In this document: positions 720-40,745 of the stretch, piece by piece
Layout: each line of letters opens with the position of its first letter
How positions within the stretch are numbered: the stretch's first letter is position 1
Origin: Macrostomum lignano
Lineage: Eukaryota
NCBI GenBank assembly: GCA_002269645.1
Contig: NIVC01000875.1
Coordinates: 186,001-250,000 of the forward strand
Direction: 5' to 3'
Length of the DNA stretch: 64,000 nucleotides
Program-made: the position numbers and the translations under genes
The notes under the pieces: model-generated
Told to the model about the DNA's origin: nothing
The model's input: only the letters and a program-made list of their open reading frames with translations
Databases searched by the model: none

Positions 720-3700
720 CTGTTGGGAAATTTCGAAAGTGAATCAGGATGCGTTGAGCTGCTCGGTAGAATATTGGTATCGCCTGGCAGACAGGCGTAA
801 ATGAGGAGATGCACGGGAGTAACAGCAAGTGGAGGGTTTTGTTGGATTTAGTATACCTTTTTGCAATCAATTTCGTCGTTTTTGCGTTCAATTTCGGCGC
901 GAGCGCTAGTGTGCAGTCTAAACAACTGAGCCATAGACACTGGGCAACTTTTGCGTTCAAATTCGGCCTTTTTGCGTCCTATTTCGGCAGCTTACGGCAT
1001 CAAACATACTTGCGGAGACGACTATAGGCCTGCTTTAGGAGACAAATTTTTCGTCCCACCCTCACTGAATTCGATCGAGTGAGAAAGTGTCTATGGCAAA
1101 AACATTCGAACTGTGCCCACAGTGCGGCCCATGTGATTGCGCTGCCGAAATAGGACGCAAAAAGGCCGAATTTGAACGCAAATGTTGCCCAGTGTCTATG
1201 GCTCAGTTGTTTGGACTGCACACTAGCGCTCGCGCCGAAATTGAACGCAAAAACGACGAAATTGATTGCAAAAAGGTATATTCAGTAACTCAGCTTCCAC
1301 AGAAGCCTCACAGATTCTCAGGAACTCTCTCGAACTCTTTCTGAGTCTGAGCAAACTTCTGCTTTATTAAATCAAATTAAGCACAATTTTTCTTTCCTGG
1401 GCTTGAGGCTGGCGTCTGAGTGCATATTTCTCAAAGTAGGAGACGCATCCTTAGCGTAAGCACAGTAAGTCTGCTTGACAACTGATAAAAAAGCGCAAAA
1501 CTGGTGCCACATCTGCATTAGCATCATATCGCATAGGCATCTAAGGCTAGCCCAGTAACTGTACATTTCTACCTGACGATGAGGAACTCGTGCCCCATCA
1601 GCTCCAGAGCAGACTTTCTGCTTTTGCGGTCCATGGCGGTGCAGCGGCTGTAGAAGTCCTGCAGCTCCTCTGAGCAGCCCGTCGGCAGGGCGGGGGCGCC
1701 GCTGCTTCTCAGCCTTTCGGGCAGCGTGTGAAGCATTTTGTGCTCAGCGAAGGGCCGCCTGCCCGAGACCATCTGGAAGACCGAGCAGCCGAACGCCCAG
1801 ATGTCCGACGCTCTGCTGTACCGCGGGCTGTCCGACTCTTCCGGTGCCAGCAGCTCCGGAGCCAAGAAGCTCAGAGTGCCTTTGGGGGTGGCTTTGGAGT
1901 CCGAGATGTGGGTGACTGACTCCAGCTTGATTGACAGGCCAAAGTCGATCAGCTTGATTCGCGTGTTGTCAGCACAAACAATCATGTTCGAGCAGTTTAT
2001 GTCTCTGTGGATCACGGGCGGCTGCCGGCTGTGCAGGTAGAGCAGCGCGCGGCAGATCTACGAGCGGTCGGTCAGTGAGCAGTCATCATTCATGGAACAT
2101 GGAACAGTAGCATCAAGGATGCACAATGCTCACCTGCTCGCTGAAGTCTCGAATCGTCAGCTCGTCCAGCGGCTTGTTGTTGTCGATGAACCTCCCCAAG
2201 CTTCGGCCGTCCAGCAGCTCCATGAACACAACGACTGTGGCGGGCTCCGGCTGAGCGATGTGCAAGAACCTGACGATGTTGGGATGCTGCAGTTGGCACA
2301 GGTTTCTCTCGCTCTCGACAGCTCTGTGGATCTCTGTGCTCACAGAGGTCAGCTCGTCACCGAGCTGCACAGGCAGTCTGAGAGTCTTGGCAGCGCACGT
2401 GACGCCCGTGTCAGTTCGAACTTCGTGAACTTCGCCGAAGCCACCGCGACCGATGAGGCGAACGGCGTCCCAGCGTTCCAGGAGCGGGGGGCTTTCGAGT
2501 CTGAGGGGATGCGAATTGAGACAATGAGGGAAAATTTGCATGCTGTAGCAGTGTGTGCTGTAGCTGTGTGCTGTAGCTGTGTGCTGTAGCTGTGTGTGCT
2601 GTAGCTGTGTACTGAAGGAACTCACGGCACTGCCAGAGGCTCGTCAAAGTAAATCTTGCCGTCGTACCTAAAAATCCAGTGCGGAGTCTGAGGTCCGGAG
2701 ATATCTTTAATTTTAACAGAGAAAAACAGAAAACTTTCAGCTTTTAAAAAATAACTCAACTGTCACAGAAAACTGCTTGCTGTTGTCTCACAGCTCGCAG
2801 GCAGCTGAACATTAACATTCAACTGGCAATCTGCAGTCAAACTGCACTGCAAACTCCCTCAATGCAGCTCAGTCAGTGTCTGCTGCCCATTTAAACTACA
2901 AAAATAAAAAAATGCCCACTCAGAGCAACTGCAGTCAGCTGCTCAATATTCAATCATAAATTACAGCATGATTTTATCAATGATAAATCAAGGTCAGAGA
3001 GACATTCTCAGTCGCCATGGAAACTCACCCACGCAGCAGCTCGGCCAGTTCGCTCTTTCCGTTCTGTGTGGCCAAATCCAGCGCAGTCCTGCCGTCTCTG
3101 TCCTTCAGGCTCCAATCCGCCCCTGAGTCCAGCAGAACCCGACCGACTGCGGCGGCGGTGTCGGGAGGCGCACTCATGGCTGCTTCCATGAGTGGCGTGG
3201 ATTCACAGCAATCCCTGGCATTGGCGGAGGCTCCGGCAGTCAGCAGAGCGGAGGCTGCGGCAGAATTGCCAGCACCGGCTGCAAGGAGCAGGCAACTGTC
3301 AGCCCATATATTTGCACAGGTGGGGTCACCCAGCTGCACCAGCTGCTCCCACAGAGCCTCATCACCGCACGAGCTGTTCTGAGCTGCCCACATCAACGCG
3401 GTGCGACCCAATTCGTCAGGCAGGTCGCAGCCGTCGCAGGTCGCCGCTCGCCGCAGCCCCGCCGAGTCGCCCGCCTCGGCCAGCCGCCGCAGTTCCTTAC
3501 GATCCGCCTCCTCCTGCAAAGGCGAGCGGGAAATTTGAGCACAGCTGCTCAGCTGCAGCCGCATCGGCACCGCAGATGCCGCTCACCTGGGCTGTCAGGC
3601 CGGAAATCTCGCCGAGTGCATCTACGACCAGCCGCATCTCCCTGCAACAGCAAAAATGAGCAGCGAATTCGCAATTATCTCAAATCCGGCAACTACGATC

Positions 3701-4898
3701 GCAAAAAAAATTCATGATAAATTTAGTAAACAGAGATTTCAAATTATCTGAGCTGCTTGCAGATGGAGTTTCCAAGAGGACTGCAGCAGCTCTGCAACAA
3801 TCAGCATTGGCGAGAGCGCATCCGACTTCTCACACGCAGCTCATTTTCCATTTCTTCAGCATGATTTTCCTTCCACCTCACAATGTCTCACAAAGCACTC
3901 ACGCACAGCCTCCCAGTTCTCCATCTGCAGCTCAACCCACACACTCTTACTGCACACTGAGGCCCTACAGCTTCCATTCTCGACTCAGATCAACCGGCAC
4001 CCCATTGGCTGCGAGGCAGCCAGCCAATCACAGCTCTCGCCCATCAAGCAGTCAGTCAGAGACAAGCTCAGCTGACTGGCTCTGATTGGCTGGCCTGAGA
4101 CTGCAGCTTTGGCCACCCCAGCCGAATGCTGAAAAACTTGATGGACACAGCAGCGAACTGCTCACTCACCGCTCGATGTAGCTGGCCAGCTCTGAGTGGC
4201 CGCTGAGCCTCGCCAGTTCCGACGCCGTCCGACCCTGGCGATCCTTCAGTCCGAGCAGCTCCGACCTCTTCGAGTTTCCGTGCTCCTTGCACTCATTGAA
4301 CCTATCCTGCCTGAGCAGGTGCAGCAGGTGCTTGGCGCATTTCCAGCTTCCAGTCCGCGCCGCCTCCATCAGCGGAGTGGCGCCGTTGTCGTTCTGCAGC
4401 CACTTCGCATCGAACGAAAGCAGCGTCAGCAGCCGCAAGTGGTTACTCCGGGCTGCCAGGTGCGCAGCCGTGTCGCCGTTCGAGTCAGCCGCCCTGGGGT
4501 TCGCGCCCAGCTCAAATAAGTACAAGATGCACTTTTCAGTGTGCACGGGAGTCTCAGGAGCGTCGGCCACCCACATGAGGACGGTCCGACGAGCTGCATC
4601 AGCGCTGGTGACCAGCTGGCGCGTTGCCAGCCGCCGTACCTGGTCGAAGTCACCTTGGATGACGTCATTGGCGAGAGTCTGGAGATCGGCTGGTGAGTCT
4701 CCGACGCTTGCCCGGTTGCTGGGGTCCGGCTGAGTGAGTTCCGTCAACTACAATTGAGGCACCCAAGCTGCACATTCAAACATGTGAGTGAATTCCTGCA
4801 ACTGCAGTCAAGCCTACAAATATATTATGCTTCAATTTGCTCACTTAAACTTTACTTACTCTTTCGTCAGGAAATGATGTTGGCGCTTGCTCTGCCAT
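1..4898 (-). CDS. Gene A: ankyrin-repeat + tandem MAP3K-like protein kinase (3' end runs off the window)
   Basis: Exons with GT-AG borders and matching phases: 4860-4898 (MAEQAPTSFPDER), 4170-4678 (alternative acceptor 4747), 3587-3641, 3029-3513, 2626-2667, 2134-2500, 1573-2057, 362-719, <1-285. Ankyrin motifs (GxTPLMxAA, GRTALDLA) and kinase motifs (GRGGFG, AAK, HRD, DFG, APE). The kinase1-kinase2 join is inferred. Confidence 0.8.
854..1278. mobile_element. MITE (Tc1/mariner-type TA target), 425 bp
   Basis: 138-bp terminal inverted repeats (854-991 and 1141-1278, 2 mismatches), termini TACC...GGTA, TA duplication at 852-853 and 1279-1280. The empty site is visible in gene B (GGATATCA-TA-TTCAGT near 15550). 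Confidence 0.9.
1569..2500 (-). CDS. Gene A kinase domain 1 (STE/MAP3K-like Ser/Thr kinase), split by a 76-nt intron (2058-2133)
   Basis: LIGRGGFGEV, CAAK, ESE, HPNIVRF, HRDINCSN, KLIDFG, GTLSFLAPE, SDIWAFGCSVFQMVSG. Removing the intron joins FSEQ|ICRALLYLH. Confidence 0.92.
3029..4678 (-). CDS. Gene A ankyrin region (block A 4170-4678, linker 3587-3641, block B 3029-3513; about 4-5 repeats per block)
   Basis: NGDTAAHLAA, NGATPLMEAA, QGRTASELA in block A; LGRTALMWAA, ESTPLMEAA, DGRTALDLA in block B. Donors CG|GTGAGT and GG|GTGAGT. Confidence 0.9.
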
Positions 4899-5552: not shown

Positions 5553-5922
5553 CAGATTTGCTGACATAAAGATTTTCAGGGCTGCTGTGGGGCAGGCAGA
5601 TTTGCTGACATAAAGATTGTCAGGGCTGCTGTAGGGCAGATTTGCTGACATAAAGATTGTCAGGGCTGCTGTAGGGCAGATTTGCTGACATAAAGATTGT
5701 CAGGGCTGCTGTAGGGCAGATTTGCTGACATAAAGATTGTCAGGGCTGCTGTAGGGCAGATTTACTGACATAAAGATTGTCAGGGCTGCTGTAGGGCAGA
5801 TTTGCTGACATAAAGATTGTCAGGGCTGCTGTAGGGCAGATTTGCTGACATAAAGATTGTCAGGGCTGCTGTAGGGCAGATTTGCTGACATAAAGATTGT
5901 CAGGGCTGCTGTGGGGCAGATT
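5553..5922. repeat. 40-bp minisatellite, about 9 copies
   Basis: Unit GTAGGGCAGATTTGCTGACATAAAGATTGTCAGGGCTGCT. Confidence 0.95.
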
Positions 5923-6075
5923 TCTGGAAAGAGTAGAAACAGAAAATCTCAGAGAAGAGAGGCTGGAGGTAATCTCTGAAGAGGCATAGACATAAACATT
6001 CATACACATAAGCATAAAAAGGCCTAAACAAAAAGAACCATTAGCGTAAACAAAAATAAATTAAAGATGATTAAA

Positions 6076-6500
6076 GTCGCAGGTGTCTCAGCTCAGCCTG
6101 AGAGTCCGGCAGGGCAGCGGCCGCCTCTGCAGCAGGTTTTATTGGCCCTGGAGCCGCTGCCGTGAATTCCTTCTCACCCTGCCTTTCTGCCCCTCCCATT
6201 GGCTCTGAGGGAACAGCAGAACTGCTGCAATGTCAGTGCGTGGCTACTTGAAGTAGTCAGTGTGCGACTGCGGATTTGCTTGCAAAGTTTGTGCAATTAA
6301 AAAGCAAATAAGAATAATATTTTTATTCGCAGGCCAGCTCCATTTATCCATCAGGAATTTCATACTGGAAAATACTTTGTTGCGGTGAAGCAGATCAGTG
6401 CAAACATAAACAGCTTGAGCACATGATTGTTCTTCTCAGACTCAACTGCAAGACTCGGACTGCTACTCAACAGTAGTCAGTAAAGCGTCAGTAAAGCTTT
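6076..6500 (-). promoter_or_regulatory. Orphan duplicate of the type I promoter module
   Basis: Near-identical to 19497-19900 but with no exon 1 downstream. Confidence 0.55.
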
Positions 6501-6884
6501 CACAAACTCATAGGTGTTTTTTTAGTGGATGGAATTCCGCTCAAGTTTTATTTTGACAAAAATTGTTTTGAGTCGCAACTGCACTGGTTGAAAACTCCAC
6601 GAGTTCGACAAAATGAGATGAGAGATGAGAGCACTGCAGCATGAGGTGCATATGATCAGTAATTTTTGGAATTTGGAAGAGCCAGAAACCAGGAGGCGAG
6701 TTGTGAAATGAGAAATTTAGAAATTCACTTTTTAACCGCTGGCCAGCTGAAGGGGGCCTTCTGAGTTTAAAGACGTCAGGATTGGCGATCTGCAGTCCTT
6801 CAGGGCCTCCCTTGTTGCCTCTGAAATCACAAAACTAAAGCAGAAACCTTTGAAGTCGCAGGCTCTAACTCTGTCTCTAAATCT

Positions 6885-7200
6885 CCCCTCCTCTTCCATC
6901 AGTATATCCCCTCCTCCCTTCCCCATCTCCACTCTCCTCCCTTCCCCATCTCCCCTCTCCTCCCTTCCCCATCTCCCCTTTCCTCCCTTCCCCATCTCCA
7001 CTCTCCTCCCTTCCCCATCTCCCCTCTCCTCCCTTCCTCATCTCCACTCTCCTCCCTTCCCCATCTCCCCTCTCCTCCCTTCCTCATCTCCACTCTTCTC
7101 CCTTCCCCATCTCCACTCTTCTCCCTTCCCTATCTCCCCTCTCCTCCCTTCCCTATCTTCCCTCTCCTCCGATCCTTCTATCCTTTCACTCTCTCCACTG
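6885..7200. repeat. CT-rich degenerate simple repeat
   Basis: Polypyrimidine tract with CCCTTCCCCATCTCC-like subunits. Confidence 0.9.
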
Positions 7201-7419
7201 TCTCTCATTTTACTTACGATTTTCAGCTATAAGCCACTGAAATGTTGTTGATACGATGAGATAAGAATCCAATCACGTTACTATAGTAAGTAGTATACCC
7301 ATACCACACAGCACACTATTTTACATTGGCTAACTTGTATTATAAAACTACAGATATGCTTTCAGAGAACAGTGGATCTGCATTACGTTATGATAAATTT
7401 AGTTCAGCCAGGTGCTTTA

Positions 7420-10400
7420 TGTCTGTATTGATCTGGAAACTCAATTCACGAATCAGAGTCCTTCGTATAACTTTGAATGCTCAGATATCAAAATGATTTT
7501 TTGAAATGAATTTCAATCTGATTTTTTCACTATTTACGAGCGTAAACTGAATAAAAATGTGAGAGACTTGAAAAAAGCGTTTTTTTGTAGAGGCTAAAAA
7601 TGCTTTGTCGTCAAGGTAACAAAAACGACGCCTTTTGTGTGAGTGTTGTGTTCTCAGACCTCTCTGAGTGTGTGCTCATGCTCATGGTCAGGACTAAAGC
7701 TCACTCGCTACTCCATCAATCGGCTGTCTCCACAGATGCCGAATGGATGGAGAAGCTGCAACTCAATTGGCAGCTTCACGAGGCCTCTAATGCAGCGTGC
7801 AGTGTTGAGAGCAGTTTTTTTGTCAGCCACTCAATGAATTTTCTGCCTAATCTGGGGGATGGGATTTTCGTGGGATTTGGGATAATAGGGAAAGTTTTTT
7901 TGCTCACGACTTGCCAGCATCCGAAGGTGTTGCTGATGACGAATAGAACTGAATTTTGCTCCTGCAATGCATGCAGAGAGACTTGAAAATCCTCAACTCC
8001 AGGTCGCTAGAAGGTCATGTCTGTACTCAGTCTTCAGAACAACTAATTTATTGCTTTGCCTCAAACAGCTGATGGCCTCTGTATTCACTTCTGTCTCAAG
8101 ACTCTGCCACTAAGCGGAATTCAAGAGTGAGTACAGGTGCGCTTCTCAGGACTGAAGCTTTATGCTTGTACTGGCTTATTCTCGCCAACAATGATAGGCA
8201 TTGTAGTTCAGACTGTCCCTCTGCTCTCAGGCTCATTGGCCTTTTTGTCTAGTCTTCTTTCAAGCAAAAGAAGAAGCATCGACGCATCGACAACGTGAAA
8301 GACATGCGACATGTTTTCATTTCTGCGAGCATAAGAATGGTTTCAAACTTAAACAGTCTAATAGTCTAAACATACCAGAAGAAGGGGCAGAGCAGCTATG
8401 TGGTAAACTCGTCTGGCTCACGTGCCGTGACACGTTTGATTACGAAGACTTGCTGAGACATATCATATTTTAGGTCCACAGATCTCAAAAAAACGTTTAA
8501 CAAAACTGACTCGATTCAAATCGAATGCAGGTCTTTTCTAGTTGCTAGGCAGGTCTTGGGCTCGATACGCGCTCAGCGGCAGCCTGTTTGTTGCAACTAC
8601 GCTCGTAGTTTCCATTGAATTGGCTGCAGGGCGGGCCGAGGACACGGCCATTCCACTAATTCAGGGGCAAACTACAGGCCGCTCTACCCGGCCCACAATA
8701 ACACTCCGGCCCGCTCAAGGTTTGTGTCTCTTCTCAGCTCTCTCCTCTCTAATCTCATCCCCCTTTTCTCTCTCTCCTTCCCTCCTCTCTCCCTCTCTTC
8801 TCTCCCTTCTTTATTCTACTCTCCTATCTCTTCTCTCCACCCTTTCCTCTCCGTTCTCTCATCTCCCTTCTCTCCTTTCCCTTCTTTTCTCACCTCCCCT
8901 TTTCTCTCCTCCCCTTCGCTTCTCTCGTCTCGTCTCTCTTCTCTTCTCTCATCTCCCTTCTCTTCTCTCCTTTCCTCTCCCTTCTCTCCTCTCCCTTCCC
9001 TTCTCTCCTTTCCTCTCCCTTCTCTCGTCTCTCTTTTCTTCTCTCCTCTCCCTTCTCTTCTCTGCTCTCCCTTCTCTCCTCTCCTCTCCTCTCTCCTCTC
9101 CTTTCTCTCCTCTCCCTTCTCTCCTCTCCTCTCTCCTCTCCCTTCTCTCCTCTCCCTTCTCTCCTCTCCTCTCCTCTCTCCTCCCCCTTCTCTCCTGTCC
9201 TCTCCCTTATCTTCTCTTCTCCCCTTCTTTTCTCTCCTATCTCCTCTTATCTCTCCTCCTAATGCACTCCTCTCTCCCGCCCGCAGGCATGCGCTAGATT
9301 CTCCATCAGGCACTTCAGGTAAAAGTTTTTAAACCCTGCACTAAACCCTGAAAAGCCCAGAGACAGAGGCTCGTCTTTTGGCCCCGAGAAACTCGGGCCA
9401 GCCGGCATCGTCTGCGGACGGGTTGGGTTCGAGGTAGTGGAGTCGGTCTCGGTTGAAGGCTCGGCAGAGGCAGACGAAGTGCAGCTTGGCATCTTCGTTT
9501 TCAAGGTTGCAGAAGGGCCAGAGTAGGTTCTATTTTTTGATTTAGTATAAATTTTAATTATAAATATAAGTGTTTCTAATTTTAATACTTTTTTCTACGT
9601 CAGGTTCCTGAAAGTGCGTCATGTCAGCATTTTTCCTCTACGGTCTGGCTTCCGACGTCCACGAGGACTCAAGCTTGACTGTGTTGTATTTCGCTCTTTT
9701 GAGGGCCGTAAGAGGTCTCAAGTCTATGGCATTGAAGTATGGTCCTGTATGGCACTGCATACAGTGTTCCCAGTGGTCCTTGCCAAAGCCATGTGCAGGT
9801 GCTGCTGCTGGCGCTGCTTATGGAGGAGTCTGGAAACATCTCTAATCCAAACACACTGAAGCTGTAAGATTCCAATCCAGCAGAAGATCGACATTCAAGT
9901 GTCTTTTTCATCTCGCGATATAAAGTGTTTTTATTACACACCTCACTCATTGTACCTTTCTCATTTTCTTCACACCCACTCAGACTCCAAACTTTGTTAC
10001 TGAAAACGTCTTCTTGCTTTGGGATGTGAGAGTTTTCGAAGCCGCCTTTGTTAAAGCATTCTATGAATACGTTTGATAATGTGTGTATTTAGCGCTGGTG
10101 GTTTCATGACAAACCGCAGACAGAACAGCCCATAATGAGCAACAAATGCAAAGATCTTCACCATTAATACAGGAACATTTGCCTGAAGAGTGAAGAGTAT
10201 AATTTATCTAAGCAGGGAGTCACTTTTACTGCACTATCGAATAGCAATGAGATCGCATAGATAAGCGAGCAAAGTGCAAGGTATGCAGCATGTTCGGCTG
10301 GCAAAATCCTCGCTATAAAACTTTTACAGACTAAATTTGGATCAGGCTTCGCGCTTATATACAGCATAGATTTTAAGACAATGAACTTCAATAGAATGAG

Positions 10401-10905
10401 ATGAGGCTGCTAAACTCTGAGATCAGTGATCTCGCCATTAATGCATGAGAAGAAGCTGCAGAACAGGCTGCATCAACATGGCAAGTCATCAGCGTATCGT
10501 AGCCTGATTTCCACTGAAACAGATTTTAGTTGTTTTAATGTATCCGCTTTGAATTAAGCATTATGTAATAGTATAATTTTTATATGCAATCAGTATTCTG
10601 TAATAAAGTAATAAAGTTGGAAAGTGATGGATAAAAGACGCTGGTGCAGCTACAGGGACTACTAAATATTTAGAGCAGAGCAATACTTAGAGTATTTAGT
10701 GGTCCCTGTGCCACTGCTACTACTGAGGCTCATGCTGCTACTGATATAATAAAGCGGGTGCCAGCGCAGATTAGGAAATAATAAGTTAATGGACAGCGCA
10801 AGCTATGAAATATTTGAAAAAATGAAGTTTTTTGTAAATGTGCATTGCTTGAAGAACTAAAAAAGTCAGAAGTTCCACACAGGCTGGCACACAGTCCTAA
10901 AGATA
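7420..10905. repeat. Spacer block X, segmental duplicate of 19900-24120
   Basis: Colinear high identity with 19900-20359 plus 21213-24120, including the CT tract and the 189-nt exon-like ORF. Confidence 0.85.
8720..9290. repeat. CT-rich simple repeat (paralog at 22095-22590)
   Basis: (CTCTC/CTT)n degenerate tract. Confidence 0.9.
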
Positions 10906-10919
10906 CCGCGATTATCGTA

Positions 10920-11100
10920 TGAGAAGACAGTGTCTGAGAGATGCACTGCCTGCACCTGATTGGCTGAATGCGAGCCCGGTGCCTCGGTCTCGGACTCTCC
11001 TTTATACGGAACGCATACTACTTATGGCAGTAGAGGTTTGAGTGCAGACTTGCAGAGTCGAGTGGGCAGTGAAAAAATGCAGAGATGAGAGAGGTGGAGA
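10920..11100 (-). promoter_or_regulatory. Orphan type II promoter remnant (no gene downstream)
   Basis: Homologous to 31245-31420 and 47905-48040; CCAAT retained, TATA degraded at the junction. Confidence 0.55.
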
Positions 11101-11139
11101 ATGATTTGATGTGAAAATACTGGTATACTTGAGAGTAGC

Positions 11140-11745
11140 AGATGGAATATGCAGAGAGAATATGCAGAGAGAATATGCAGATAGAATATGCAGATAGAAT
11201 ATGCAGATAGAATATGCAGATAGAATATGCAGAGAGAATATGCAGAGAGAATATGCAGATGGAATATGCAGAGAGAAAATGCAGATAGAATATGCAGATA
11301 GAATATGCAGAGAGAATATGCAGATAGAAAATGCAGAGAGAATATGCAGAGAGAATATGCAGATGGAATATGCAGAGAGAAAATGCAGATAGAATATGCA
11401 GATGGAATATGCAGAGAGAAAATGCAGATAGAATATGCAGATGGAATATGCAGAGAGAAAATGCAGATAGAAAATGCAGATAGAATATACAGAGAGAATA
11501 TGCAGATAGAATATGCAGATAGAATATGCAGATAGAATATGCAGATGGAATATGCAGAGAGAATATGCAGATGGAATATGCAGATGGAATATGCAGATAG
11601 AATATGCAGATGGAATATGCAGATAGAATATGCAGATAGAATATGCAGATAGAATATGCAGATAGAATATGCAGATAGAATATGCAGATAGAATATGCAG
11701 ATGGAATATGCAGATAGAATATGCAGATAGAATATGCAGATAGAA
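11140..11745. repeat. 13/14-bp minisatellite (ATAGAATATGCAG)
   Basis: Direct tandem units; the paralogous array at 31455-31890 has unit ATAGAACATCCAG. Confidence 0.95.
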
Positions 11746-11808
11746 TTCACTGCGGTTTGTGTCCGGTTCAATTCATTGGTCTATGTCGATTGGCATAATT
11801 TTTATCCT

Positions 11809-12262
11809 TAGAATCTCCCAGCATCTCAGAATCTCCCAGCATCTCAGAATCTCCCAGCATCTCAGAATCTCCCAGCATCTCAGAATCTCCCAGCATCTCA
11901 GAATCTCCCAGCATCTCAGAATCTCCCAGCATCTCAGAATCTCCCAGCATCTCAGAATCTCCAAGCATCTCAGAATCTCCCAGCATCTCAGAATCTCCCA
12001 GCATCTCAGAATCTCCCAGCATCTCAGAATCTCCCAGCATCTCAGAATCTCCCAGCATCTCAGAATCTCCAAGCATCTCAGAATCTCCCAGCATCTCAGA
12101 ATCTCCCAGCATCTCAGAATCTCCCAGCATCTCAGAATCTCCCAGCATCTCAGAATCTCCCAGCATCTCAGAATCTCCAAGCATCTCAGAATCTCCCAGC
12201 ATCTCAGAATCTCCCAGCATCTCAGAATCTCCCAGCATCTCAGAATCTCCCAGCATCTGAGA
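11809..12262. repeat. 18-bp minisatellite (AGAATCTCCCAGCATCTC), about 25 copies
   Basis: Direct tandem units; paralog at 33545-34512. Confidence 0.95.
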
Positions 12263-13348
12263 ATTCGGCACTCTAAAAAAACAAAGAAACTCTCACATCA
12301 AACTTTCTCAGTTTTTTTTATTTCAACAAAAATAAGCGACTCAAGCACTCGATGTGCTGATAGTAGCATGACGCGGAGCCAGCTTGGTGTGCAGAATTAA
12401 GGAGAATTTTTAGTATATGGATATGAAAATTGAAATAGATTGAAAAACCGAAATGGCTGTCTGGTGACACAAAATTAAAAGTTTTCAGTAAAAATGTTTC
12501 AATAATTTAAGCGTATTTGTCTGAGCACTCTCAATCAGCCCTTCCCTGAGCTATATCAGACGCAGCTCACTTTAAAGCCAAGCTCTTTAGCTAAAAATTA
12601 ATTCTAAAATGAGAAAATGCTTAATCATGACCACATGCAAAGCACGCAGGCAGCAAAGGTTGGCTGAACAGCACTATGACGTGATTCTTGAACTTTCCGC
12701 TGCAGTCAAACTGCCTCACTGTGAGTTCCGCAACCAACAGAAGATTTTTATCATAACCCAAAGCTTTCAAAGCTCGCACAGCTGCTCAAAATTAGTAAAC
12801 AGCTAAACAGCTTATTATGCAGCTCTCCTGTCCCGTGCTGCTTTTGATCTTGACGTCAGTGTCAGCTGATTCTTGGGGCTGCATGGCTGCCTGCTCTCAG
12901 GTGAGCTTTCCGCGACTCTCTTATCGGGAAGACCTTGCTCGATCTAAGCTCAGGTGCAGCCTCGGTGGCTCCACTTATCTTGCTTTTCTACAGTTGTCTG
13001 CCTTGAGGTGCGGCCTGTGGCACTTTTGCCCTTTTTGGTCTGTCCTTGCAGCGAATCTGAAGCTCTTGTTTGGTCATCTTTCGAAAAGATTTGAATAAAC
13101 TTTTGCTTTTGCAAGCAAAACACTTCGGAGGGTTTTTGAGAAGCCTGGCAATTGTGCATCATGATGAAGTGAAACTTTTGTGCTGCAATGCATCCGAATT
13201 CAACTGTAAGGGCTTTGCTTTCAGCCAATGCGAGCGCTCAGCCGGAAAAGCTGAGGACACGAACCCTGCCTCAGCCAGTGAATGAACTCTAATGTACAAG
13301 TAAATTATTGCTCTCCTTCCCCATTTCTCCATCAGATCCCTGAGCCAG

Positions 13349-13535
13349 GAGTGACACTTAATCATTGTTAATGATCAAACCACATACGCATCCACATTGT
13401 CTCATAGGCCACGAGTGATACTTAATCATTGTTAATGATCAAACCACATACGCATCCACATTGTCTCATAGGCCACGAGTGACACTTAATCATTGTCAAT
13501 GATCAAACCACATACGCATCAACATTGTCTCATAG
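13349..13535. repeat. 64-bp tandem repeat, about 3 copies
   Basis: Units start at 13349, 13413 and 13477. Confidence 0.9.
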
Positions 13536-14482: not shown

Positions 14483-15423
14483 TTAGTGCTGTGAGTCAGA
14501 CTTTTTCCTCAAGAACTCGTGCTCCAACAGCTTTTCTGCCGAGTGTCTCTCACTGCGGTCCTTGGCGGTGCAGCGGCTGTAGAAATCCTGAAACTCTGCG
14601 GACCGGCCCTCCGGCAGGGCGGGGGCGCCCCTCCTGTAAAGATCAAGTGCCATTTCCCAGAAGTTTTTTACTTTTGAGAACGGTTTGGTACCGGAGGCCA
14701 TCTGGAAGACCGAGCAGCCGAACGCCCAGATGTCCGACTCTCTGCTGTACTGCTCGCATTCCGAGGTGCCGATTCCGAGCAGCTCTGGCGCCATGAAGCT
14801 CAAAGTACCTTTCAATGACTCGGGAAAAGCTGAGTGGCGACTGACTGACTGCTCTAGCTTGATCGACAGGCCGAAGTCGATCAGCTTGATTCGCGTGTTG
14901 TCAGCACAAACAATTATGTTCGAGCAGTTGATGTCTCTGTGGATCACGGGCGGCTGCCGGCTGTGCAGGTAGAGCAGCGTGCAGCAGATCTACGAGCGGT
15001 TGGTCAGTGAGCAGTCATCATTCATGGAACATGGAACAGTAGCATCAAGGATGCACAATGCTCACCTGCTCGCTGAAGTCTCGAATCGTCAGCTCGTCGA
15101 GCGGCTTGTTGTTGTCGATGAACCTCTCCAAGCTTCGGCCGTCCAGCAGCTCCATGAACACAACGACTGTGGCGGGCTCCGGCTGAGCGATGTGCAAGAA
15201 CCTGACGATGTTGGGATGCCGCAGTCGGCACAGGTTTTTCTCGCTCTCGACAGCTCTGTGGATCTCTGTGCTCACAGAGATTTGGTCATCACCGAGCTGC
15301 ACAGGCAGTCTGAGAGTCTTGGCGGTGCACCTGATGCCTCTGTCGGTGACAACTTCCTGGATGTCACCAAAGCATCCTCTTGCAACGAACCGAGTGGAGT
15401 CCCAGCTCTTCCTGAAAATGGAG
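14483..15423 (-). CDS. Gene B kinase domain 2 (altered glycine loop ARGCFG)
   Basis: FVARGCFGDIQEV, TAK, HRDINCSN, DFG, GTLSFMAPE; intron 14990-15065; stop at 14483-14485. Confidence 0.9.
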
Positions 15424-18400
15424 CTGTTGGGAACATTGGAAAGCGACTCAGAAAGCGTTGAGCTGCTATTCAGACTTTTTGCATTGCCTGACAGACAGAC
15501 TAAAATTAGGGGATGCACGGGCGTCACTGCAGTTGGAGGATTTTGTCGGATATCATATTCAGTAAAACGCATCTGACACAGCAGCCCCACAGATTCCCAG
15601 GAACTCCCTCGAACTGTCTACGTCTGAGCAGGGATTTCGCTTTATCAATGCAGTATAGGCACAATTTTATTTTTCTGAGGTTCAAGCTAACACCTCTCAA
15701 TGCTCACTGCTCAATTTAGGTGGCGCATCTTTAGCGTGAGCACAGTGAGCCCGCATGACTGGTTATAAAACAATGCAACTCCGTTCTCACCTATGCATTA
15801 GCATCATATCGCATAGGCATCTAAGGCTAGCCCAGTAACTGTACATTTCTACCTGACGATGAGGAACTCGTGCCCCATCAGCTCCAGTGCAGACTTTCTG
15901 CTTTTGCGGTCCATGGCGGTGCAGCGGCTGTAGAAGTCTTGCAGCTCCACTGAGCAGCCCGTCGGCAGGGCGGGGGCGCCGCTGCTTCTCAGCCTTTCGG
16001 GCAGCGTGTGAAGCATTTTGTGCTCAGCGAAGGGCCGCCTGCCCGAGACCATCTGGAAGACCGAGCAGCCGAACGCCCAGATATCCGACTCTCTGCTGTA
16101 CCGCGGGCTGTCCGACTCTTCCGGTGCCAGCAGCTCCGGAGCCAAGAAGTTCAGAGTGCCTTCGGGGGTGGCTTTGGAGGCTGAGATGTGGCTGACTGAC
16201 TGCTCCAGCTTGACTGACAGGCCAAAGTCGATCAGCTTGATTCGCGTGTTGTCAGCACAAACAATTATGTTCGAGCAGTTGATGTCTCTGTGGATCACGG
16301 GCGGCTGCCGGCTGTGCAGGTAAAGCAGCGCGCGGCAGATCTACGAGCGGTCGGTCAGTGAGCAGTCATCATTCATGGAACATGGAACTGGAGCATCAAG
16401 GATGCACAATGCTCACCTGCTCGCTGAAGTCTCGAATCGTCAGCTCGTCCAGCGGCTTGTTGTCGATAAACCTCCCCAAGCTTCGGCCGTCCAGCAGCTC
16501 CATGAATACAACGACTGTGGCGGGCTTCGGCTGAGCGATGTGCAAGAATCTGACGATGTTGGGATGCTGCAGTCGGCACAGGTTTTTCTCGCTCTCGACA
16601 GCTCTGTGGATCTCTGTGCTCACAGAGGTTTGGTCATCACCGAGCTGCACAGGCAGTCTGAGAGTCTTGGCAGCGCACGTGACGCCCGTGTCAGTTCGAA
16701 CTTCCTGGACTTCGCCGAAGCCTCCTCGGCCGATGAGGCGAACGGCGTCCCAGCGCTTCAGGAACGGAGGACCTTCGGGTCTGAGGGAATGCGAATTGAA
16801 GCAATGAGGGATAATTTGCATGCTGTAGCTGTCTGTGCTGTAGCTGTGTGCTGTTGCTGTGTGCTGTAGCTGTGTGTTGTAGCTGTGTGTGCTGTAGCTG
16901 TGTGTGCTGTAGCTGTGTGCTGTAGCTGTGTGCTGTAGCTGTGTGCTGTAGCTGTGTGTGCTGTAGCTGTGTGCTGTAGCTGTGTGTGCTGTAGCTGTGT
17001 GTGCTGAAGGAACTCACGGCGGTGCCAGAGACTCCTCGAAGTAAATCTTGCCGTCGTACCTAAATAGGCAGTGCGGAGTCTGAAGTCAAGAGGGAATTCA
17101 GTTGAGAGCCCATGCTCTGTGCTTCATTTCTTCATTTTGTTTTAATTAACTATGAAACAGATTTCATTAATACTTTTGTTTTATTGTAAAAAATGATATT
17201 AGCAGAAAAGCACAAAAAATTTCAGATGTTGAAATTAAACTCAACTGTCACAGCAAAATGTTTGCTGGTGTCTCACAGCTCGCAGGCAGCTGAACATTAA
17301 TATTCAACTGGCAATCTGCAGTCAAACTGCACTGCAAACTCCCTCAATGCAGCTCAGTCAGTGTCTGCTGCCCATTTAAACTACAAAAATGTTAAAATGC
17401 CCACTCAGAGCAACTGCAGTCAGCTGCTCAATATTCAATCATAAAGTACAGCATGATTTTATCAATGATAAATCAAAGTCAGAGAGACATTCTCAGTCGC
17501 CATGGAAACTCACCCACGCAGCAGCTCAGCCAGTTCGATATTTCCCTTCTGTGTGGCCAAATACAGCGCAGTCCTGCCGTCTCTGGTCTTCAGGTTCCAA
17601 TCCGCCCCTGAGTCCAGCAGAACCCGACCCACTGCGGCGGCGGTGTCGGGGGGCGCAATGATGGCTGCCAGCATGAGGGGCGTGAATTCAGCCCGACCCC
17701 TGGCATTGGCGGAGGCTCCGGAAGCCAGCAGAGCGGAGGATGCGGCAGAATTGCCAGCCTCGGCTGCCCAGTGCAGGCAACTTGTAGCCCATATGGTCGC
17801 ACAGGTGGGGTCACCCAGCAGCACCAGCTGCTCCCACAGAGCCTCATCTCCGCACGAGCTGTTCTCAGCAGCCCACGTCAACGCAGTGCGACCCTCATGG
17901 TCAGGCAGGTCGCAGCTGCCGCGGGTCACCGCTCGCCGCAGCCCCGCCGAGTCGCCCGCCTTGGCCAGCCGCCGCAGTTCCTGTCGATCTGCCTCCTCCT
18001 GCAAAAGCGAGCGGGAAATTTGAGCACAGCTGCTCAGCTGCAGCCGCATCGGCACCGCAGATGCCGCTCACCTGGTCTGTCAGACCGGAGATCCTGCCAG
18101 ATGCATCCACAAGCAGCCACATCTCCCTGCAACAGCAAAAATGAGCAGCGAATTTCCAATTTTCTCAAATCCGACAACTACGATCGCCAAAATAAATATT
18201 TATGATAAATTTAGTAAGCAGAATAAATTCCTAACTATCTGAGCTGCTCGCAGATGGAGTTTCCAAGAGAACTGCAGCAGCTCTGCGACAATCAGCATTG
18301 AGAGCGCATCCGACTTCTCATACGCAGCTCATTTTCCATTTCTGCAGCATGAGTTTCCTTCCATCTCACAATGTCTCCAAAAAAGCACGTACGCACAGTC

Positions 18401-19486
18401 CCTACAGTTTCCACTCTCGACTGAGATCAGCCGGCACCCCATTGGCTGTGAGGCAGCCAGCCAATCACATCTCTCGCCCATCAAGCAGTCAGACAGAGAC
18501 AAGCTCAGCTGACTGGCTCTGATTGGCTGGCCTGAGACTGCAGGTCTGGCCACCCCAGCCGAATGCTGCAAAACTTGATGGACACAGCAGCGAACTGCTC
18601 ACTCACCGCTCGATGTAGCTGGCCAGCTCTGAGTGACCACTGCGACTCGCCAGGTCCGACGCCGTCCGACCCTCGCGATCCTGCAGTCCGAGCAGCAGCG
18701 ACCTCTTTGAGTTTCCGTGCTGAAAAAACTCATTGAATCTTATCTGCCTGAGCAGATGCAGCAGGTGCTTGGCGCATTTCCAGCTTCCAGTCCGCGCCGC
18801 CTCCATCAGCGGAGTGGCGCCGTTGTCGTTCCGCAGCCACTTCGCATCGAACGACAGCAGCGTCAGCAGCCGCAGGTGGTCCCGACGGGCTGCCAGGTGC
18901 GCAGCCGTGTCGCCGTTCGCGTCAGCCGCCTTGGGTTTCGCGCCCAGCTCAAATAAGTACAAGATGCACTTTTCAGTGTGCACGGGAGTCTCAGGAGCGT
19001 CGGCCACCAGCATGAGGACGGTCCGACGAGCTGCATCAGCGCTGGTGACCAGCTGGAGCGTTGCCAGCCGCCGCACCTGGCCGAAGTCACCTCGGATGAC
19101 GTCGTGGGCGAGAGTCTGGAGATCGGCTGGTGAGGATCTGACGCTTGCCCGGTTGGTGGGGTCCGGCTGAGTGAGCTCCTGCAACTGCAATTGAGGCACC
19201 CAAGCTGCTCATTCAAACAGGTGAGTGAGTCTTTGCAACTACAGTGGAACCTCCTTCAGGTATTAATGTGTTTCAATTTGGTCACTTTAACGTCACTTAC
19301 TTCTTCGTCAAGTAGTGGCCTTGGTGGCTTTGGTGGCTTTGGTGGCTTTGGTGGCTTTGGTGGCTTTGGTGGCTTTGGTGGCTTTGGTGGCTTTGGTGGC
19401 TCTCCTAGTGAACTTCGTCGTCTTATTGGTGGTGATGGTGGTGGTGATGCTGGTGGTGGTGGTGGTAGTCGCCCTCGCTCTGCCAT
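14483..19486 (-). CDS. Gene B: Pro-rich N-terminus + ankyrin repeats + tandem MAP3K-like kinases (997 aa if fully spliced)
   Basis: Exons 19301-19486, 18607-19115, 18072-18126, 17514-17998, 17018-17059, 16417-16780, 15853-16340, 15066-15423 and 14483-14989 sum to 2994 nt, open, ending KKSDSQH*. Confidence 0.8.
15849..16780 (-). CDS. Gene B kinase domain 1
   Basis: LIGRGGFGEV, AAK, HRDINCSN, DFG, GTLNFLAPE; 76-nt intron 16341-16416. Confidence 0.92.
16820..17005. repeat. Intronic (GCTGTAGCTGTGT) microsatellite in intron 5; homologs at 2541-2610, 28655-28984, 45110-45335, 56975-57060
   Basis: Same motif at the same intron position in all five genes, with lengths of about 70-330 bp. Confidence 0.9.
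17514..19115 (-). CDS. Gene B ankyrin region (two blocks plus linker exon)
   Basis: Same exon sizes (509/55/485 nt) and ankyrin motifs as gene A. Confidence 0.9.
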
Positions 19487-19900: not shown

Positions 19901-20160
19901 TCAATCTTGAATTCTCACTCATATCTTTGAATGCAAAGATATTTATTTAATTTTTTTAAATGAATTCATCACTCTCATTTTTTCACTATTTAAACTGAAT
20001 AAAAATGTGGAAGACTTGGAAAAATCGTTTTTTGTAGAGGCCTAAAATGTTTTGTTGTCATGGCAACAAAAACGACGCCTTGTGTGTGTGCTGTGTTCTC
20101 AGCCCTCCCTGAGTGTGTGCTCATGCTCATGGCCAGGACTAAAGCTCACTCGCTACTCCA

Positions 20161-20348
20161 TCAATCGGCTGTCTCCGCGGATGCCTGATGGATGGAGAAG
20201 CTGCAATTCAATCGGCTGTCTCCGCGGATGCCTGATGGATGGAGAAGCTGCAACTCAATCGGCTGTCTCCGCGGATGCCTGATGGATGGAGAAGCTGCAA
20301 CTCAATCGGCTGTCTCCGCGGATGCCTGATGGATGGAGAAGCTGCAAC
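20161..20348. repeat. 47-bp tandem repeat x4
   Basis: Units at 20161, 20208, 20255 and 20302; single copy at the paralogous site near 7717. Confidence 0.9.
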
Positions 20349-20359
20349 TCAATTGGCAG

Positions 20360-21212
20360 TTAATCGATACAACGATTAATAATAGTAAATTAATTACGCA
20401 ACTGGCAAGCGGATCTCAGCTTGAATAATAAACCGAACAGGACCACGGAGGAAGACTCCTAACCACTGGCCTAACCCAGGACCTACTCTCAGCGAAAGCC
20501 CTGACGAATCGGCTGTTCAGCGGAGCACTGACTAAGTTCTGTCAGCGCTGCCCTTCAGTGTGACACTGAGGCCCTCTGGGTAGAGGCCACGTACTTTGTC
20601 GAATCCGTCACTCTATCTAGAACGCGCTTAATAGCGACGACTTCAGACACTGGTGCCGTATCGTTACGCTATAAGACTGAAGCAGTCGGGCAGGGAGTGA
20701 AACTCGGACCGGGGTGATGAAATCGGGCGCCTCAAAGCGCGAACCAAAAATAGGGCAAAACGGCCGGGAGGTTGGAACAAAACCAAAAGCCGGGGAGAGA
20801 AGTGAGATTCGACCGCCAAACACACTTTCATTTATAGTCACTGTCAGACCCCTCACAACCCCCCTCAAGCCGGGTGGTGGTCGTCTGGCCGGCCGCTCGC
20901 TAAGCTGAATTGCACTGTGCCCGCGGCGCCGGGTAGAGTTGGATTTTGCCGCGTGCCGGGGTCCAGGCCGACCTTGATTGGCTGGCCGCGCAACGCTGGG
21001 GTTCGCAAAAACTTCAACCCTCCGCTGAGTCACGAAATTGGCGTCTGACTTTTACCCTGTTTACGCAAAATTAGATTCTAACTAACAAGAAAAAAGTACA
21101 TTGAAAACGTGACTAAATTAAAGCAAAATACAATAATTATCTTATCAACAATAATACAGAAGCTAACTAACTAATAGAATTCAAAAATTACACAAAAGAT
21201 GCTAACACTACA
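20360..21212. mobile_element. Unclassified insertion (about 850 bp), absent from the paralogous block at about 7775-7825
   Basis: Flanks on both sides match the 7.7-kb copy. GC-rich core and A-rich right end; no recognisable ORF, TIR or TSD. Confidence 0.35.
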
Positions 21213-24200
21213 AGCCACTCAATGCATATTCTGCCTAATCTGTGGGCTGGGATTTCCATGAGATTAGGGTTAATAGGAAAAGTTTTTTTGCTCACGACTT
21301 GCCAGCATCCGAAGGTGTTGCTGATGACGAATAAAACTGAATTTTGTTCCTGCAATGCATGCAGAGAGACTTGAAAATCCTCAACTCCAGGTCGCTAGAA
21401 GGTCATGTCTGCACTCAGTCTTCAGAACAACTAATTTATTGCTTTACCTCAAATAGCTGATGGCCTCTGTGTGCACTTCTGTCTCAAGACTCTGCCACTA
21501 AGCGGAATTCAAGAGTGAGTACAGGTGCGCTGCTCAGGACTGAAGCTTTATGCTTGTACTGGCTTATTCTCGCCAACAATGATAGGCATTGTAGTTCAGA
21601 CTGTCCCTCTGCTCTCAGGCTCATTGACCTTTTTGTCTAGTCTTTTTTCAAGAAAAAGAAGAAGCATCGACGCATCGACAACGTGAAAGACATGCGACAT
21701 TTTTTCATTTCTGCGAGCATAAGAATGGTTTCAAACTGAAACAGTCTAACAGTCTAAACAGATCAGAAGAAGGGGCAGAGCAGCTCGTCTGGCTCACGTG
21801 CCGTGACACGTTTGATTACGAAGACTTGCTGAGACATATCATATTTTAGGTCCACAGAAATAAAAAAACGTTAAAAAAACTGACTCGATTCAAATCGAAT
21901 GCAGGTCTTTTCTAGTTGCTAGGCAGGTCCTAGGCTCGATACGCGCTCAGCGGCAGCCTGTTTGTTGCAACTACGCTCGCAGTTTCCATTGAATTGGCTG
22001 CAGGGCGGGCCGAAGACTCGGCCATTCCACTAATTCAGGGGCAACTACAGGCCGCTCTACCCGGCCACAATAACACTCCGGCCCGCTCAAGGTTTGTGTC
22101 TCTTCTCAGCTCTCTCCTCTCTAATCTCATCCCCCTTTTCTCTCTCTCCTTCCCTCCTCTCTCTCTCTCTCTCTCTCTCTCTGCTCTCTCTTCTTTATTC
22201 TACTCTCCTATCTCTTCTCTACTCTCTTATCTCTTCTTTTCACCCTTTCCTCTCCGTTCTCTCATCTCCCTTCTCTCCTCTCCCTTCTTTTCTCTCCTCC
22301 CCTTTTCTCTCCTCCCCTTCGCTTCTCTCGTCTCGTCTCTCTTCTCTTCTCTCATCTCCCTTCTCTTCTCTCCTTTCCTCTCCCTTCTCTCCTTTCCTCT
22401 CCCTTCTCTCCTCTCCCTTCTCTTCTCTGCTCTCCCTTCTCTCCTCTCCTCTCCTCTCTCCTCTCCCTTCTCTCCTGTCCTCTCTTCTCTCCTCTCCCTT
22501 CTCTCCTGTCCTCTCCCTTATCTTCTCTTCTCCCCTTCTTTTCTCTCCTATCTCCTCTTATCTCTCCTCCTAATGCACTCCTCTCTCCCGCCCGCAGGCA
22601 TGCGCTAGATTCTCCATCAGGCACTTCAGGTAAAAGTTTTTAAACCCTGCACTAAACCCTGAAAAGCCCAGAGACAGAGGCTCGTCTTTTGGCCCCGAGA
22701 AACTCGGGCCAGCCGGCATCGTCTGGGGACGGGTTGGGTTCGAGGTAGTGGAGTCGGTCTCGGTTGAAGGCTTGGCAGAGGCAGACGAAGTGCAGCTTGG
22801 CATCTTCGTTTTCAAGGTTGCAGAAGGGCCAGAGTAGGTTCTAATTTTTGATTTAGTATAACTTTTAATTATAAATATAAGTGTTTCTAATTTTAATACT
22901 TTTTTCTACGTCAGGTTCCTGAAAGTACGTCATGTCAGCATTTTTCCTCTACGGTCTGGCTTCCGATGTCCACGAGGACTCAAGCTTGACTGTGTTGTAT
23001 TTCGCTCTTTTGAGGGCCGTAAGAGGTCTCAAGTCTATGGCATTGAAGTATGGTCCTGTATGGCACTGCACACAGTGTTCCCAGTGGTCCTTGCCAAAGC
23101 CTGCTGCTGCTGGCGCTGCTTATGGAGGAGTCTGAAAACATCTCTAATCCAAACACACTGAAGCTGTAAGATTCCAATCCAGCAGATGATTTGGAATCTC
23201 GTTTGATAATGTGTGTATTTAGCGCTGGTGGTATTACTTTCATGACAAACCGCAGACAGAACAGCCCATAATGAGCAACAAATGTAAAGATCTTCACCAT
23301 TAATACAGGAACATTTGCCCGAAGAGTGCGTGGTGAGGTGCGGCAGAACCAAAATGTCTGTGGCGGACAGTATGATTTGTCTAAGCAGGGAGTCACTTTT
23401 ACTGCACTATCGAATAGCAATGAGATCGCATAGAAAAGCGAGCAAAGTGCAATGAATGCAGCATGTTGAGCTAGCAAAGTCCTCGCTAGAAAACTTTACA
23501 GACTAAATTTGGGTCAGGCTTGGCGATTTTATACAGCATCGATTTTAAGACAATCAACTTCAATAGAATGAGATGGGGCAGCTAAACTCTGAGATCATCG
23601 ATCTCGCAATTAATGATGAGCATGAAAAGAAGCTGCAGAACAGGCTGCATCAAAATGACAAGTCATCAGCATATCGTACCCTGATTTTCACTGAAAAACA
23701 TCGATTTTTGGTGTTTTACGAGCACTGTATCTGCCCTGAATAAAACATTATGTAATATATTTAGTACTACAATCGTATGCAATCAGTATTCTGTAATGAA
23801 GTTATAAAGTAGTAAAGAGATGGATTGAAGACGCTGGTTCCACTGCAGGGATTACTAACTACTTAGAGTAGAGTAATACTTTGAGTATTTAGCAGAGTCC
23901 CGGTGCCACTGCTACTACTGAGGCTCACACTGCTACTGATATACTGAAGCGGGTGCCAGAGCAGATTAAGATATGATAAGTGAATGAGCAGCGTAAGCTA
24001 TGAAAGTTTTGATAAATTGAAGTTTTTTGCTAATGCGCATTGCCTGAAGAACTGAAAATTAATTAACGGTTGAATGAGTCAGAAATTCCACACAGGCTCG
24101 AACACAGTCCTACAGCTACCTCGAGTTGAGCTTCTCTTCCCAAACGACAGGTTGGTCCGCAAGAAAAATCAATGACTTTTCGCGGCAACCCCAAACGCAC

Positions 24201-24954
24201 TGTCGCAACGCCATTACTCATAAGCTAGCCTGGGAGAGCACTGCTCTGCTGATCTCTTCCTGCTTGTCAGCCCACACGCATGCAGCTCTCCACTCTCTCC
24301 TGTTGCAGCCCCAAGCCCTCCCACAATACGCTGGGCTGGAAGACAAACTTGCAAACTGGTCTCTCCCTAAAATTCTACTCATCTCTTAATCTCTCAGCAG
24401 CTGTTTCTTTATTTCTCCGGCACAGAACTTCCTTGTCTTAGAGAGCTGTGGCTATGAGTAGGATAAGCCGCAATAGGAAAGCTTGGGGGTTGCGGTGGGA
24501 GCAGGGAGGCGTGGGGAGAAAAGCAGTGGCGGGTCGAAGTCGCTACAGCCGCCTATGAGTCTTTGAAGGACCCCGCATTTACAGCGAGTGTCCATCGAAT
24601 CCTCTTTTCTCCTGCTCCTTCTAAACCCCTTCTTTCTGAAAAAGCAATGGTTTTGTCTACCGCAAATCACACACGGTTTTACCAGATTCACCGGCATGCA
24701 AAAGCAGCACAGAGACTGGCAAATGCGCGCAGACCAGCATGCAACAGGAGTTCATTGAGCCCAGCAGACTTTGAGCAAATGCAGGCAGCTGGAGAGTCGG
24801 AGCAGTGCGAGTTGCTGGTTCACTCTGGAGCCGAGCACAACCACGTGACTTTGAATATGCACTTTTAAAGTACATGATGTACATTGCAGCCATAGCGATT
24901 GGCTGCGATGGGTTCAAAACTTTGACTTATGGGAGCCACTGATGGCTGTGAGGG

Positions 24955-31454: not shown

Positions 31455-31890
31455 ATGATAGAACATCTAGATAGAATGTCCAGATATAACATTCAGATAG
31501 AACATTCAGATAAAACGTCTAAATAGAACATCCAGATCTAGAAAGAAGAACCAGATAAAACATTCAGATAGAACATCCAGATAAAAAATCCGGATAGAAT
31601 ATCCAGATCTAGATAGAACAACCAGATAGAACATCCAGATAAAACATCCGGATAGAATATCCAGATCTAGATAGAACATCCAGATAGAACATCCAGATAA
31701 AACATCCGGATAGAATATCCAGATCTAGATAGAACAACCAGATAGAACATCCAGATAAAAAATCCGGATAGAATATCCAGATCTAGATAGAACAACCAGA
31801 TAGAACATCCAGATAGAACATCCAGATAAAACATCCGGATAGAATATCCAGATAGAACATCCAGATAGAACATCCAGATAGAACATCCAG
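31455..31890. repeat. 13-bp-based minisatellite (ATAGAACATCCAG)
   Basis: Direct tandem units with higher-order variants. Confidence 0.9.

Positions 31891-40743: not shown

Positions 40744-40745
<2 letters not shown>

Follow-up and report, generated by a model that had tools for sequence, protein, structure and literature searches.

Organization of the locus

The window analysed here is a stretch of 64,000 nucleotides (nt) from the flatworm Macrostomum lignano (contig NIVC01000875.1, positions 186,001 to 250,000 of the forward strand), and the element in question is the spacer that separates two protein kinase units, kinase 1 (K1) and kinase 2 (K2), in three of its genes. Mapping with tblastn placed five paralogous ankyrin-repeat kinase genes, A to E, in tandem on the minus strand, each with a protein kinase unit of two exons behind the exons for the ankyrin repeats. 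Two such units, one downstream of the other, are present in genes A, B and E, and a single one in genes C and D. The best protein matches of the window genes are all M. lignano ankyrin-kinase (Ank+kinase) proteins, and two UniRef fragments, P0121 (against kinase 2 of gene E) and P0123 (against gene C), are 100% identical to the window sequence; judged by these matches, the source DNA is that of M. lignano.

In gene A, seven exons, from exon 1 to the second exon of K1, join into a clean open reading frame of 684 codons. Pfam analysis of the assembled protein returned Ank_2, Ank and Pkinase matches, with the ankyrin repeats N-terminal to the kinase domain, an order also given by exon mapping with the proteins P0002 and P0012. 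The nearest solved kinase domains are those of MAP3K2, WNK1 and ASK1 (E about 1e-25 to 1e-28).

All features described below lie on the minus strand of the window, and a slash outside brackets marks a splice boundary. Exon 1 of gene A (4860-4898) opens with the ATG at 4898-4896 and ends at a donor GA/GTAAGT. It is followed by exon 2 (4170-4747), which carries ankyrin repeats matching Ank_2/Ank and ends at a phase-2 donor CG/GTGAGT, by exon 3 (3587-3641; phase-0 donor AG/GTGAGC), by exon 4 (3029-3513; ankyrin repeats, phase-2 donor GG/GTGAGT) and by exon 5 (2626-2667), a linker mini-exon, YDGKIYFDEPLAV(P), with a phase-2 donor CC/GTGAGT. The first exon of K1 (2134-2500) follows the acceptor CCCCTCAG/A, in phase 2 like the K2 acceptor, and the second (1573-2057) ends ...CAC GAG TTC CTC ATC GTC AG/. 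Beyond the spacer (720-1572), the first exon of K2 (362-719) encodes a degenerate glycine loop, VRVFFGD versus GRGGFGE, and matches the Pfam Pkinase profile from position 22 onwards. The second exon of K2 (1-285) is cut by the window end in gene A; its complete copies, at 14486-14989 in gene B and 54220-54723 in gene E, end in HEFLRKKSDSQH and a stop codon.

Gene B is complete (14483-19486), with ankyrin exons, K1 at 16780-16417 and 16340-15853, the spacer at 15852-15424, K2 at 15423-15066 and 14989-14486, and a stop codon at 14485-14483. Gene E, from exon 2 onwards (54217-59196), has K1 at 56936-56570 and 56493-56009, the spacer at 56008-55156 and K2 at 55155-54801 and 54723-54220. Exon 1 is repeat-rich and uncertain in the full-length models of B and E. 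That of gene B (19486-19290) is enlarged, with a proline-rich stretch and with (PPK)n encoded by a 9-nt repeat, by comparison with which exon 1 of gene A, at 13 codons, is short.

The junction between the kinase units

An earlier note, made from the DNA sequence alone, had proposed that K1 ends in a splice donor containing a stop codon, and that this donor can be joined in frame to a conserved acceptor just before K2. Each of these sites was recovered. The donor ATCGTCAG/GTAGAA was found at three places, all of them on the minus strand, with its last exon base at 1573 (A), 15853 (B) and 56009 (E). Read through, the frame continues as ...HEFLIVR and, directly after the AGG codon, meets TAG at 1571-1569 (A), 15851-15849 (B) and 56007-56005 (E). 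The acceptor TTCCCAACAG/ ends at 720, 15424 and 55156, and joining donor to acceptor gives LMGHEFLIVS-PVYRESWDSVRFV (LMGHEFLIVS-PVYRESWD) in genes A and E and ...IVS-SIFRKSWDSTRFV (IVS-SIFRKSWD) in gene B, again in frame. A second kinase unit on the same strand, set off by a phase-2 intron with an IVS/PV(F/Y)R.SWD junction, was found both in the window and in a paralogue. An in-frame join is by itself a one-in-three chance, and the strength of the case comes from the transcript models of the paralogues described below, not from the frame.

The 5' splice site GTAGAA (1567-1572 in A; 15852-15847 in B; 56008-56003 in E) lacks the G at position +5, whereas the other donors examined across the five genes are all GTGAG or GTAAG and have it. 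The sequence GT[G/A]AG is also the enriched donor motif of M. lignano, near about 65% of donors (PMC8629364). The exon that a short and a long product would share ends, in other words, at a suboptimal 5' splice site, and what is unusual about the K1-K2 donor is its weakness, not its stop. In the paralogues the corresponding donor is GTACA, which is weak and nonetheless used.

On the acceptor side, the 3' splice region (720-750) consists of a branch-point-like CTGATTC about 30 nt upstream, followed by TTTCCCAACAG/, and this pairing of acceptor and CTGAYTC is conserved in A/E, in B and at the paralogous locus L001 despite a diverged spacer. A second acceptor lies 12 nt (TCCCGTTTACAG) past the first, with 708-719 between the two; it reads TTTACAG/A in A and E and TTTTCAG/G in B, is also in frame (IVR-ESWD or IVR-KSWD), and is the site chosen by the model P0003 and, at its first junction, by P0001.

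Transcript models of the paralogues

The GenBank protein BOX15_Mlig034440g1 (P0002, 985 amino acids) has the order Ank-K1-K2 and the junction HEFFIVS/PVFRDSWD. Its locus, L001 (NIVC01000875), reads ATCGTCAG/GTACAA (ATCGTCAG/GTACAAATG)...TTTCCTAACAG/CCCC, and so uses the same two sites as the window genes. Two further proteins, about 55% identical, have tandem kinases and a phase-2 intron in the same place: Mlig024413g1 (P0005, locus L002), with GAAAG/GTACAT...2.3 kb...TAATAG/C, and Mlig009993g1 (P0004, locus L003), with GAAAG/GTACAG. With these three models the splicing of CAG/GTAGAA to TTCCCAACAG/, as the earlier note had it, is the expected junction.

The GenBank annotation of the Mlig_3_7 assembly was built from RNA sequencing (StringTie/TACO) and a de novo transcriptome only, with open reading frames called by TransDecoder (PMC5730564), and its transcripts were split wherever experiments had mapped a spliced-leader or poly(A) site (PMC5730564). 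Because only transcripts went into this annotation, the K1-K2 junction of the paralogue is RNA-supported, and at L001 neither kind of cut, trans-splice or poly(A), separates K1 from K2. It is for the paralogues only, through this transcript-based annotation, that the junction is known in transcripts; we infer that the window copies would be spliced likewise.

The paralogues Mlig034440g1, Mlig024413g1 and Mlig009993g1 belong to the same family as the window genes and share with them the order of ankyrin repeats, kinase 1 and kinase 2, the phase-2 intron and the junction peptide IVS/PV(F/Y)R(D/E)SWD, as well as the degenerate glycine loop of kinase 2 and a K2 tail ...LRK(K/N)S.SQ. before the stop. 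They differ in their GTAC donor, which gives a boundary without a stop. The L001 locus further differs from the window genes, at about 80% protein identity, in having three kinase units and a spacer without the inverted-repeat insertion described below. A literature search on this ankyrin-kinase family in Macrostomum found nothing relevant.

The three kinase units of L001 span 20115-23671 (NIVC01000875). The middle one is a hybrid whose exon 1 is of the K3 type and whose exon 2 is of the K1 type, and it stands between two identical spacers. An unequal crossover of very recent date or a duplication in the assembly would account for it. The GenBank model of the locus contains two kinases and the older UniRef model, P0001, contains three.

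Kinase 2 as a probable part of the same gene

The proposal that one gene contains both kinase units is well supported, in that kinase 2 of A and E lacks its own start codon, kinase 2 is subject to purifying selection, and the paralogue models have the same junction. In genes A and E, no in-frame ATG for K2 was found between the upstream in-frame stop and residues 78-90; the first in-frame methionine is at residue 78-90, past the ATP-binding lobe, and for want of an earlier ATG K2 of A and E is not translatable alone as a whole domain.

K2 retains the catalytic Lys and the HRD..N, DFG and APE motifs, and its reading frames are intact in B, E and L001. The marks of a pseudogene or decaying duplicate (stops, frameshifts, or a ratio of non-synonymous to synonymous differences, pN/pS, near 1) are absent: neither a stop nor a frameshift was found in the five K2 copies, and pN/pS, at 0.56-0.58 (binomial p about 0.004), matches that of K1. 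A neutrally evolving K2 would have a probability of 0.017 of gaining no stop codon at the divergence observed. Purifying selection acts on K2.

We consider it probable, from the arrangement of the sites and the paralogue models, that the spacer is an ordinary cis-spliced phase-2 intron in one gene for ankyrin repeats and tandem kinases, and that the TAG is an automatic by-product. The gene product would carry ankyrin repeats at its N-terminus and, behind them, two Ser/Thr kinase domains in tandem, the stretches 720-1572, 15424-15852 and 55156-56008 would each be a phase-2 intron within a single gene, and kinase 2 would be read only if the weak donor CAG/GTAGAA is joined to TTCCCAACAG/ or to the acceptor 12 nt downstream. 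The 853-nt spacer of gene A is homologous to an intron that is spliced in the paralogue transcript models.

Several points weigh against this interpretation. Gene conversion is strong in the family and could be an alternative to selection as the cause of an open central K2. Genes A, B and E are absent among the transcript-derived GenBank proteins, and the sole matches of the window copies are ab initio fragments and P0003, an odd computed model; since no transcript-derived protein matches them, A, B and E may be poorly expressed. A search with the junction only, for transcript-derived proteins of the window copies, likewise returned ab initio fragments only, and among the matches P0121 runs from the intron directly into K2 and is not evidence of splicing. 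Finally, GTAGAA, lacking the +5 G, may be spliced inefficiently.

The stop codon in the donor

The earlier note had regarded the stop in the donor as a special device, which is not supported by the arithmetic of phase-2 donors or by the GTAC of the three paralogues. Because a phase-2 intron leaves two bases of a codon ahead of a GTRA/GTAG donor (GTAG, GTGA or GTAA), reading through gives NNG and then a stop. All four of the four phase-2 donors of gene A accordingly read into an immediate in-frame stop, exons 2, 4 and 5 through GTGA (NNG-TGA) and K1 exon 2 through AG/GTAG. The three paralogues carry GTAC (Tyr) at this position, with read-through tails of 11 (L001), 7 (L003) and about 25 (L002) codons, and since they do, the TAG is a lineage-specific single-base state and not a conserved device. 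The donor TAG is most likely a by-product of intron phase, and any role of it as a switch would be hypothetical. An unspliced message would end directly past kinase 1.

Contents of the spacer

The spacer is 853 nt long in A and E (55156-56008 in E) and 429 nt in B (15424-15852). Between B and E it is 73% identical, against 91-97% for the other introns of these genes. The spacers of A and E contain a 423-nt insertion resembling a foldback element or miniature inverted-repeat transposable element (855-1277 in A; identical at 55291-55713 in E), with 140-nt terminal inverted repeats that are 98.6% complementary. It is inserted at ...CTGAATAT/.../ATACTAAATCC and is absent from B and L001. Only two copies of the element were seen in the window.

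Each spacer has one AATAAA (1363-1368 in A; 55799-55804 in E; 15666-15671 in B) and the L001 spacer has none. The chance expectation of one such hexamer in 430-850 nt, estimated from base composition, is roughly 0.2-0.4. As the site in B is not homologous to that in A/E, and L001 lacks one, the spacer AATAAA would not be evidence of a conserved poly(A) site.

The conserved intronic block noticed earlier is present, ...TTCGAGAGAGTTCCTGAGAATCT/GTGAGG at 1306-1340 being kept as DNA in A/E, B and L001, with AATCTGTG(A/G)GG at 1316-1306, 15595-15585 and 55752-55742. Its suggested likeness to the linker mini-exon (FEGV..L; FEGVIYFDESL in exon 5 of gene C) did not hold up. Local alignment of the block to exon 5 of four genes gave shuffle p values of 0.014-0.064 in 8 comparisons, a marginal resemblance at chance level; in L001 the block is interrupted by an in-frame TGA, has lost the GT donor to a 6-nt insertion and is skipped by the transcript model; and no nucleotide similarity to the spacer was found elsewhere in the window. 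A mini-exon relic was rejected on these grounds.

Alternative explanations

The strongest alternative, which we nevertheless think unlikely, is a regulated competition in which the weak GTAGAA is set against termination and polyadenylation in the spacer, so that both a one-kinase protein (...HEFLIVR) and a two-kinase protein would be made. The donor is indeed clearly suboptimal against all other donors of the gene, the immediate stop on read-through leaves a complete kinase domain, and intact single-kinase members of the family exist (genes C and D). An AATAAA also lies 180-200 nt past the TAG in the spacers of A/E and B and is missing from the GTAC paralogue, but its positions are non-homologous and within chance expectation. 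The stop, moreover, is not conserved in the three paralogues that splice this intron, a single isoform is annotated at the paralogous locus, and no protein ending in HEFLIVR was present in the databases searched.

Several claims of different strength are contained in this alternative. A short one-kinase isoform, formed by non-use of the weak donor, is possible from the sequence, and some intron retention at that donor, giving a K1-only protein, is likely on general grounds; regulated toggling between the short and tandem forms would be a hypothesis. A little more doubtful still is the idea that a change from GTAC to GTAG at donor position +4, together with a newly arisen AATAAA, may have let A, B and E make both a one-kinase and a kinase plus deviant-kinase protein. 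If true, it would be an early isoform innovation or gene fission in a fast-evolving, lineage-specific kinase family.

It is improbable that the TAG is the real stop of the window copies, with kinase 2 an untranslated, decaying duplicate in the 3' untranslated region or in downstream DNA. In its favour, the C-to-G difference at donor position +4 puts a stop exactly where a kinase domain normally ends, K2 has a degenerate glycine loop, which in A and E (VRVFFGD) has deviated furthest, and no transcript-derived model was found for the window copies. Decay is at odds with the absence of a stop or frameshift in five copies, with a pN/pS of about 0.57, significantly below 1, with the neutral open-frame probability given above, and with an acceptor and branch site kept across a spacer that is otherwise 27% diverged.

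Mutually exclusive use of the two kinase units, in which the exon 5 donor CC/GTGAGT is spliced to either the K1 or the K2 acceptor to give Ank-K1 or Ank-K2 proteins, is very improbable. The donor of exon 5 in gene A could in principle be joined in frame to the K2 acceptor, which derives from the K1 acceptor and shares its phase, but no database protein with ...EPLA(V/L)P joined directly to a K2-type N-terminus was found, and the transcript-derived models hold both kinases in series.

Least credible of all is an operon in which kinase 2 would be a downstream gene in its own right, trans-spliced to a spliced leader at the conserved acceptor: about 30% of M. lignano genes are trans-spliced and the second acceptor (TTTACAG/TTTTCAG) fits the published trans-splice motif [T/C]TNCAG (PMC8629364), but the ATG of the leader end, ...GCATG, would on our reading of the sequence be out of frame with K2 at both acceptors, the first in-frame K2 methionine comes 78-90 residues in, beyond the ATP-binding lobe, and the pipeline that cuts at spliced-leader sites did not split K1 from K2 at the paralogous locus. 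An independent K2 gene, with a spliced leader or a start of its own, was rejected on the reading frame, there being no suitable in-frame start codon.

Sequence exchange and repeats in the array

All eight kinase units have nearly the same sequence across the central kinase region and its 76-nt intron. Most exons and introns of B and E are 91-98% identical, the K1-K2 spacer and K2 exon 1 (86%) being the most diverged, and the K1-spacer-K2 segments of A and E are almost identical, including the 423-nt foldback insertion. Such a pattern of divergence shows what appear to be signs of concerted evolution by gene conversion. A K1-like segment (DDQISVSTEIHRAVESE) within K2 exon 1 of gene B suggests that this exon was converted from K1. 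The kinase body of gene D is K1-like, and its 3' end (44150-44000), with the tail ..KNSLNR before the stop and the flank ACAGTACTTGGC.AAGGACTACT, resembles the terminal kinase of the tandem genes (L001 23671-23800). This combination suggests that gene D may be a K1/K2 fusion formed by deletion, or that the terminal unit may be ancestral.

A (ACAGCTACAGCAC)n microsatellite of varying copy number lies in the intron directly upstream of kinase 1 in every gene copy examined, the paralogue included (about 2530-2620, 16821-17001, 28656-28984 and 45111-45329 in the window; about 19500-20050 in L001). Upstream of exon 2 of gene E a 54-nt unit is repeated 5.4 times (59181-59473); the repeat copies the acceptor region ...CAATTGCAG/TTGCAGGAA... 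and creates several equivalent tandem 3' splice sites. The 8-10 kb intergenic stretches (5553-13535, 20161-25577, 31457-43194 and 60493-63758) are mostly minisatellite arrays with periods of 13-71 nt and up to 54 copies. Long low-complexity tracts, TC-rich and then AG-rich with a strand switch, lie near the window end.

Comparison with known systems

The gene structure that the earlier note had drawn from the sequence alone is correct, and the feature is most likely ordinary gene structure. Its main value is for annotation, in which A, B and E are each better modelled as one Ank-kinase-kinase gene than as a kinase gene with an orphan kinase fragment. The locus also shows a lineage-specific kinase family evolving in a polyploid flatworm by tandem duplication, gene conversion and duplication of exon units.

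In the choice between secreted and membrane forms of immunoglobulin mu (IgM), a weak splice donor and a poly(A) site are in competition, and truncated receptor isoforms arise by intronic polyadenylation. The switch proposed for the window genes would resemble both, in that a weak donor ending a coding exon is set against a poly(A) site to yield a short or a long protein. It differs from them in that the stop at the boundary is not conserved here and that the short mRNA and the intronic poly(A) site are putative. Should the short form be real, the locus would be a neat natural case in which a weak donor controls whether a second kinase domain, possibly a regulatory one, is added; this mechanism is already well known in other systems.

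Tandem-kinase proteins include RSK/MSK, with two active kinases, JAK, with a pseudokinase and a kinase, and the plant proteins WTK1 and Rpg1. The window genes are like them in that a single polypeptide holds two kinase domains, of which one deviates in its ATP-binding loop, and unlike them in having no specific sequence relationship to any. In contrast to RSK/MSK, JAK and WTK1/Rpg1, the kinase domains of the window genes are recent tandem duplicates of each other, with ankyrin repeats ahead of them.

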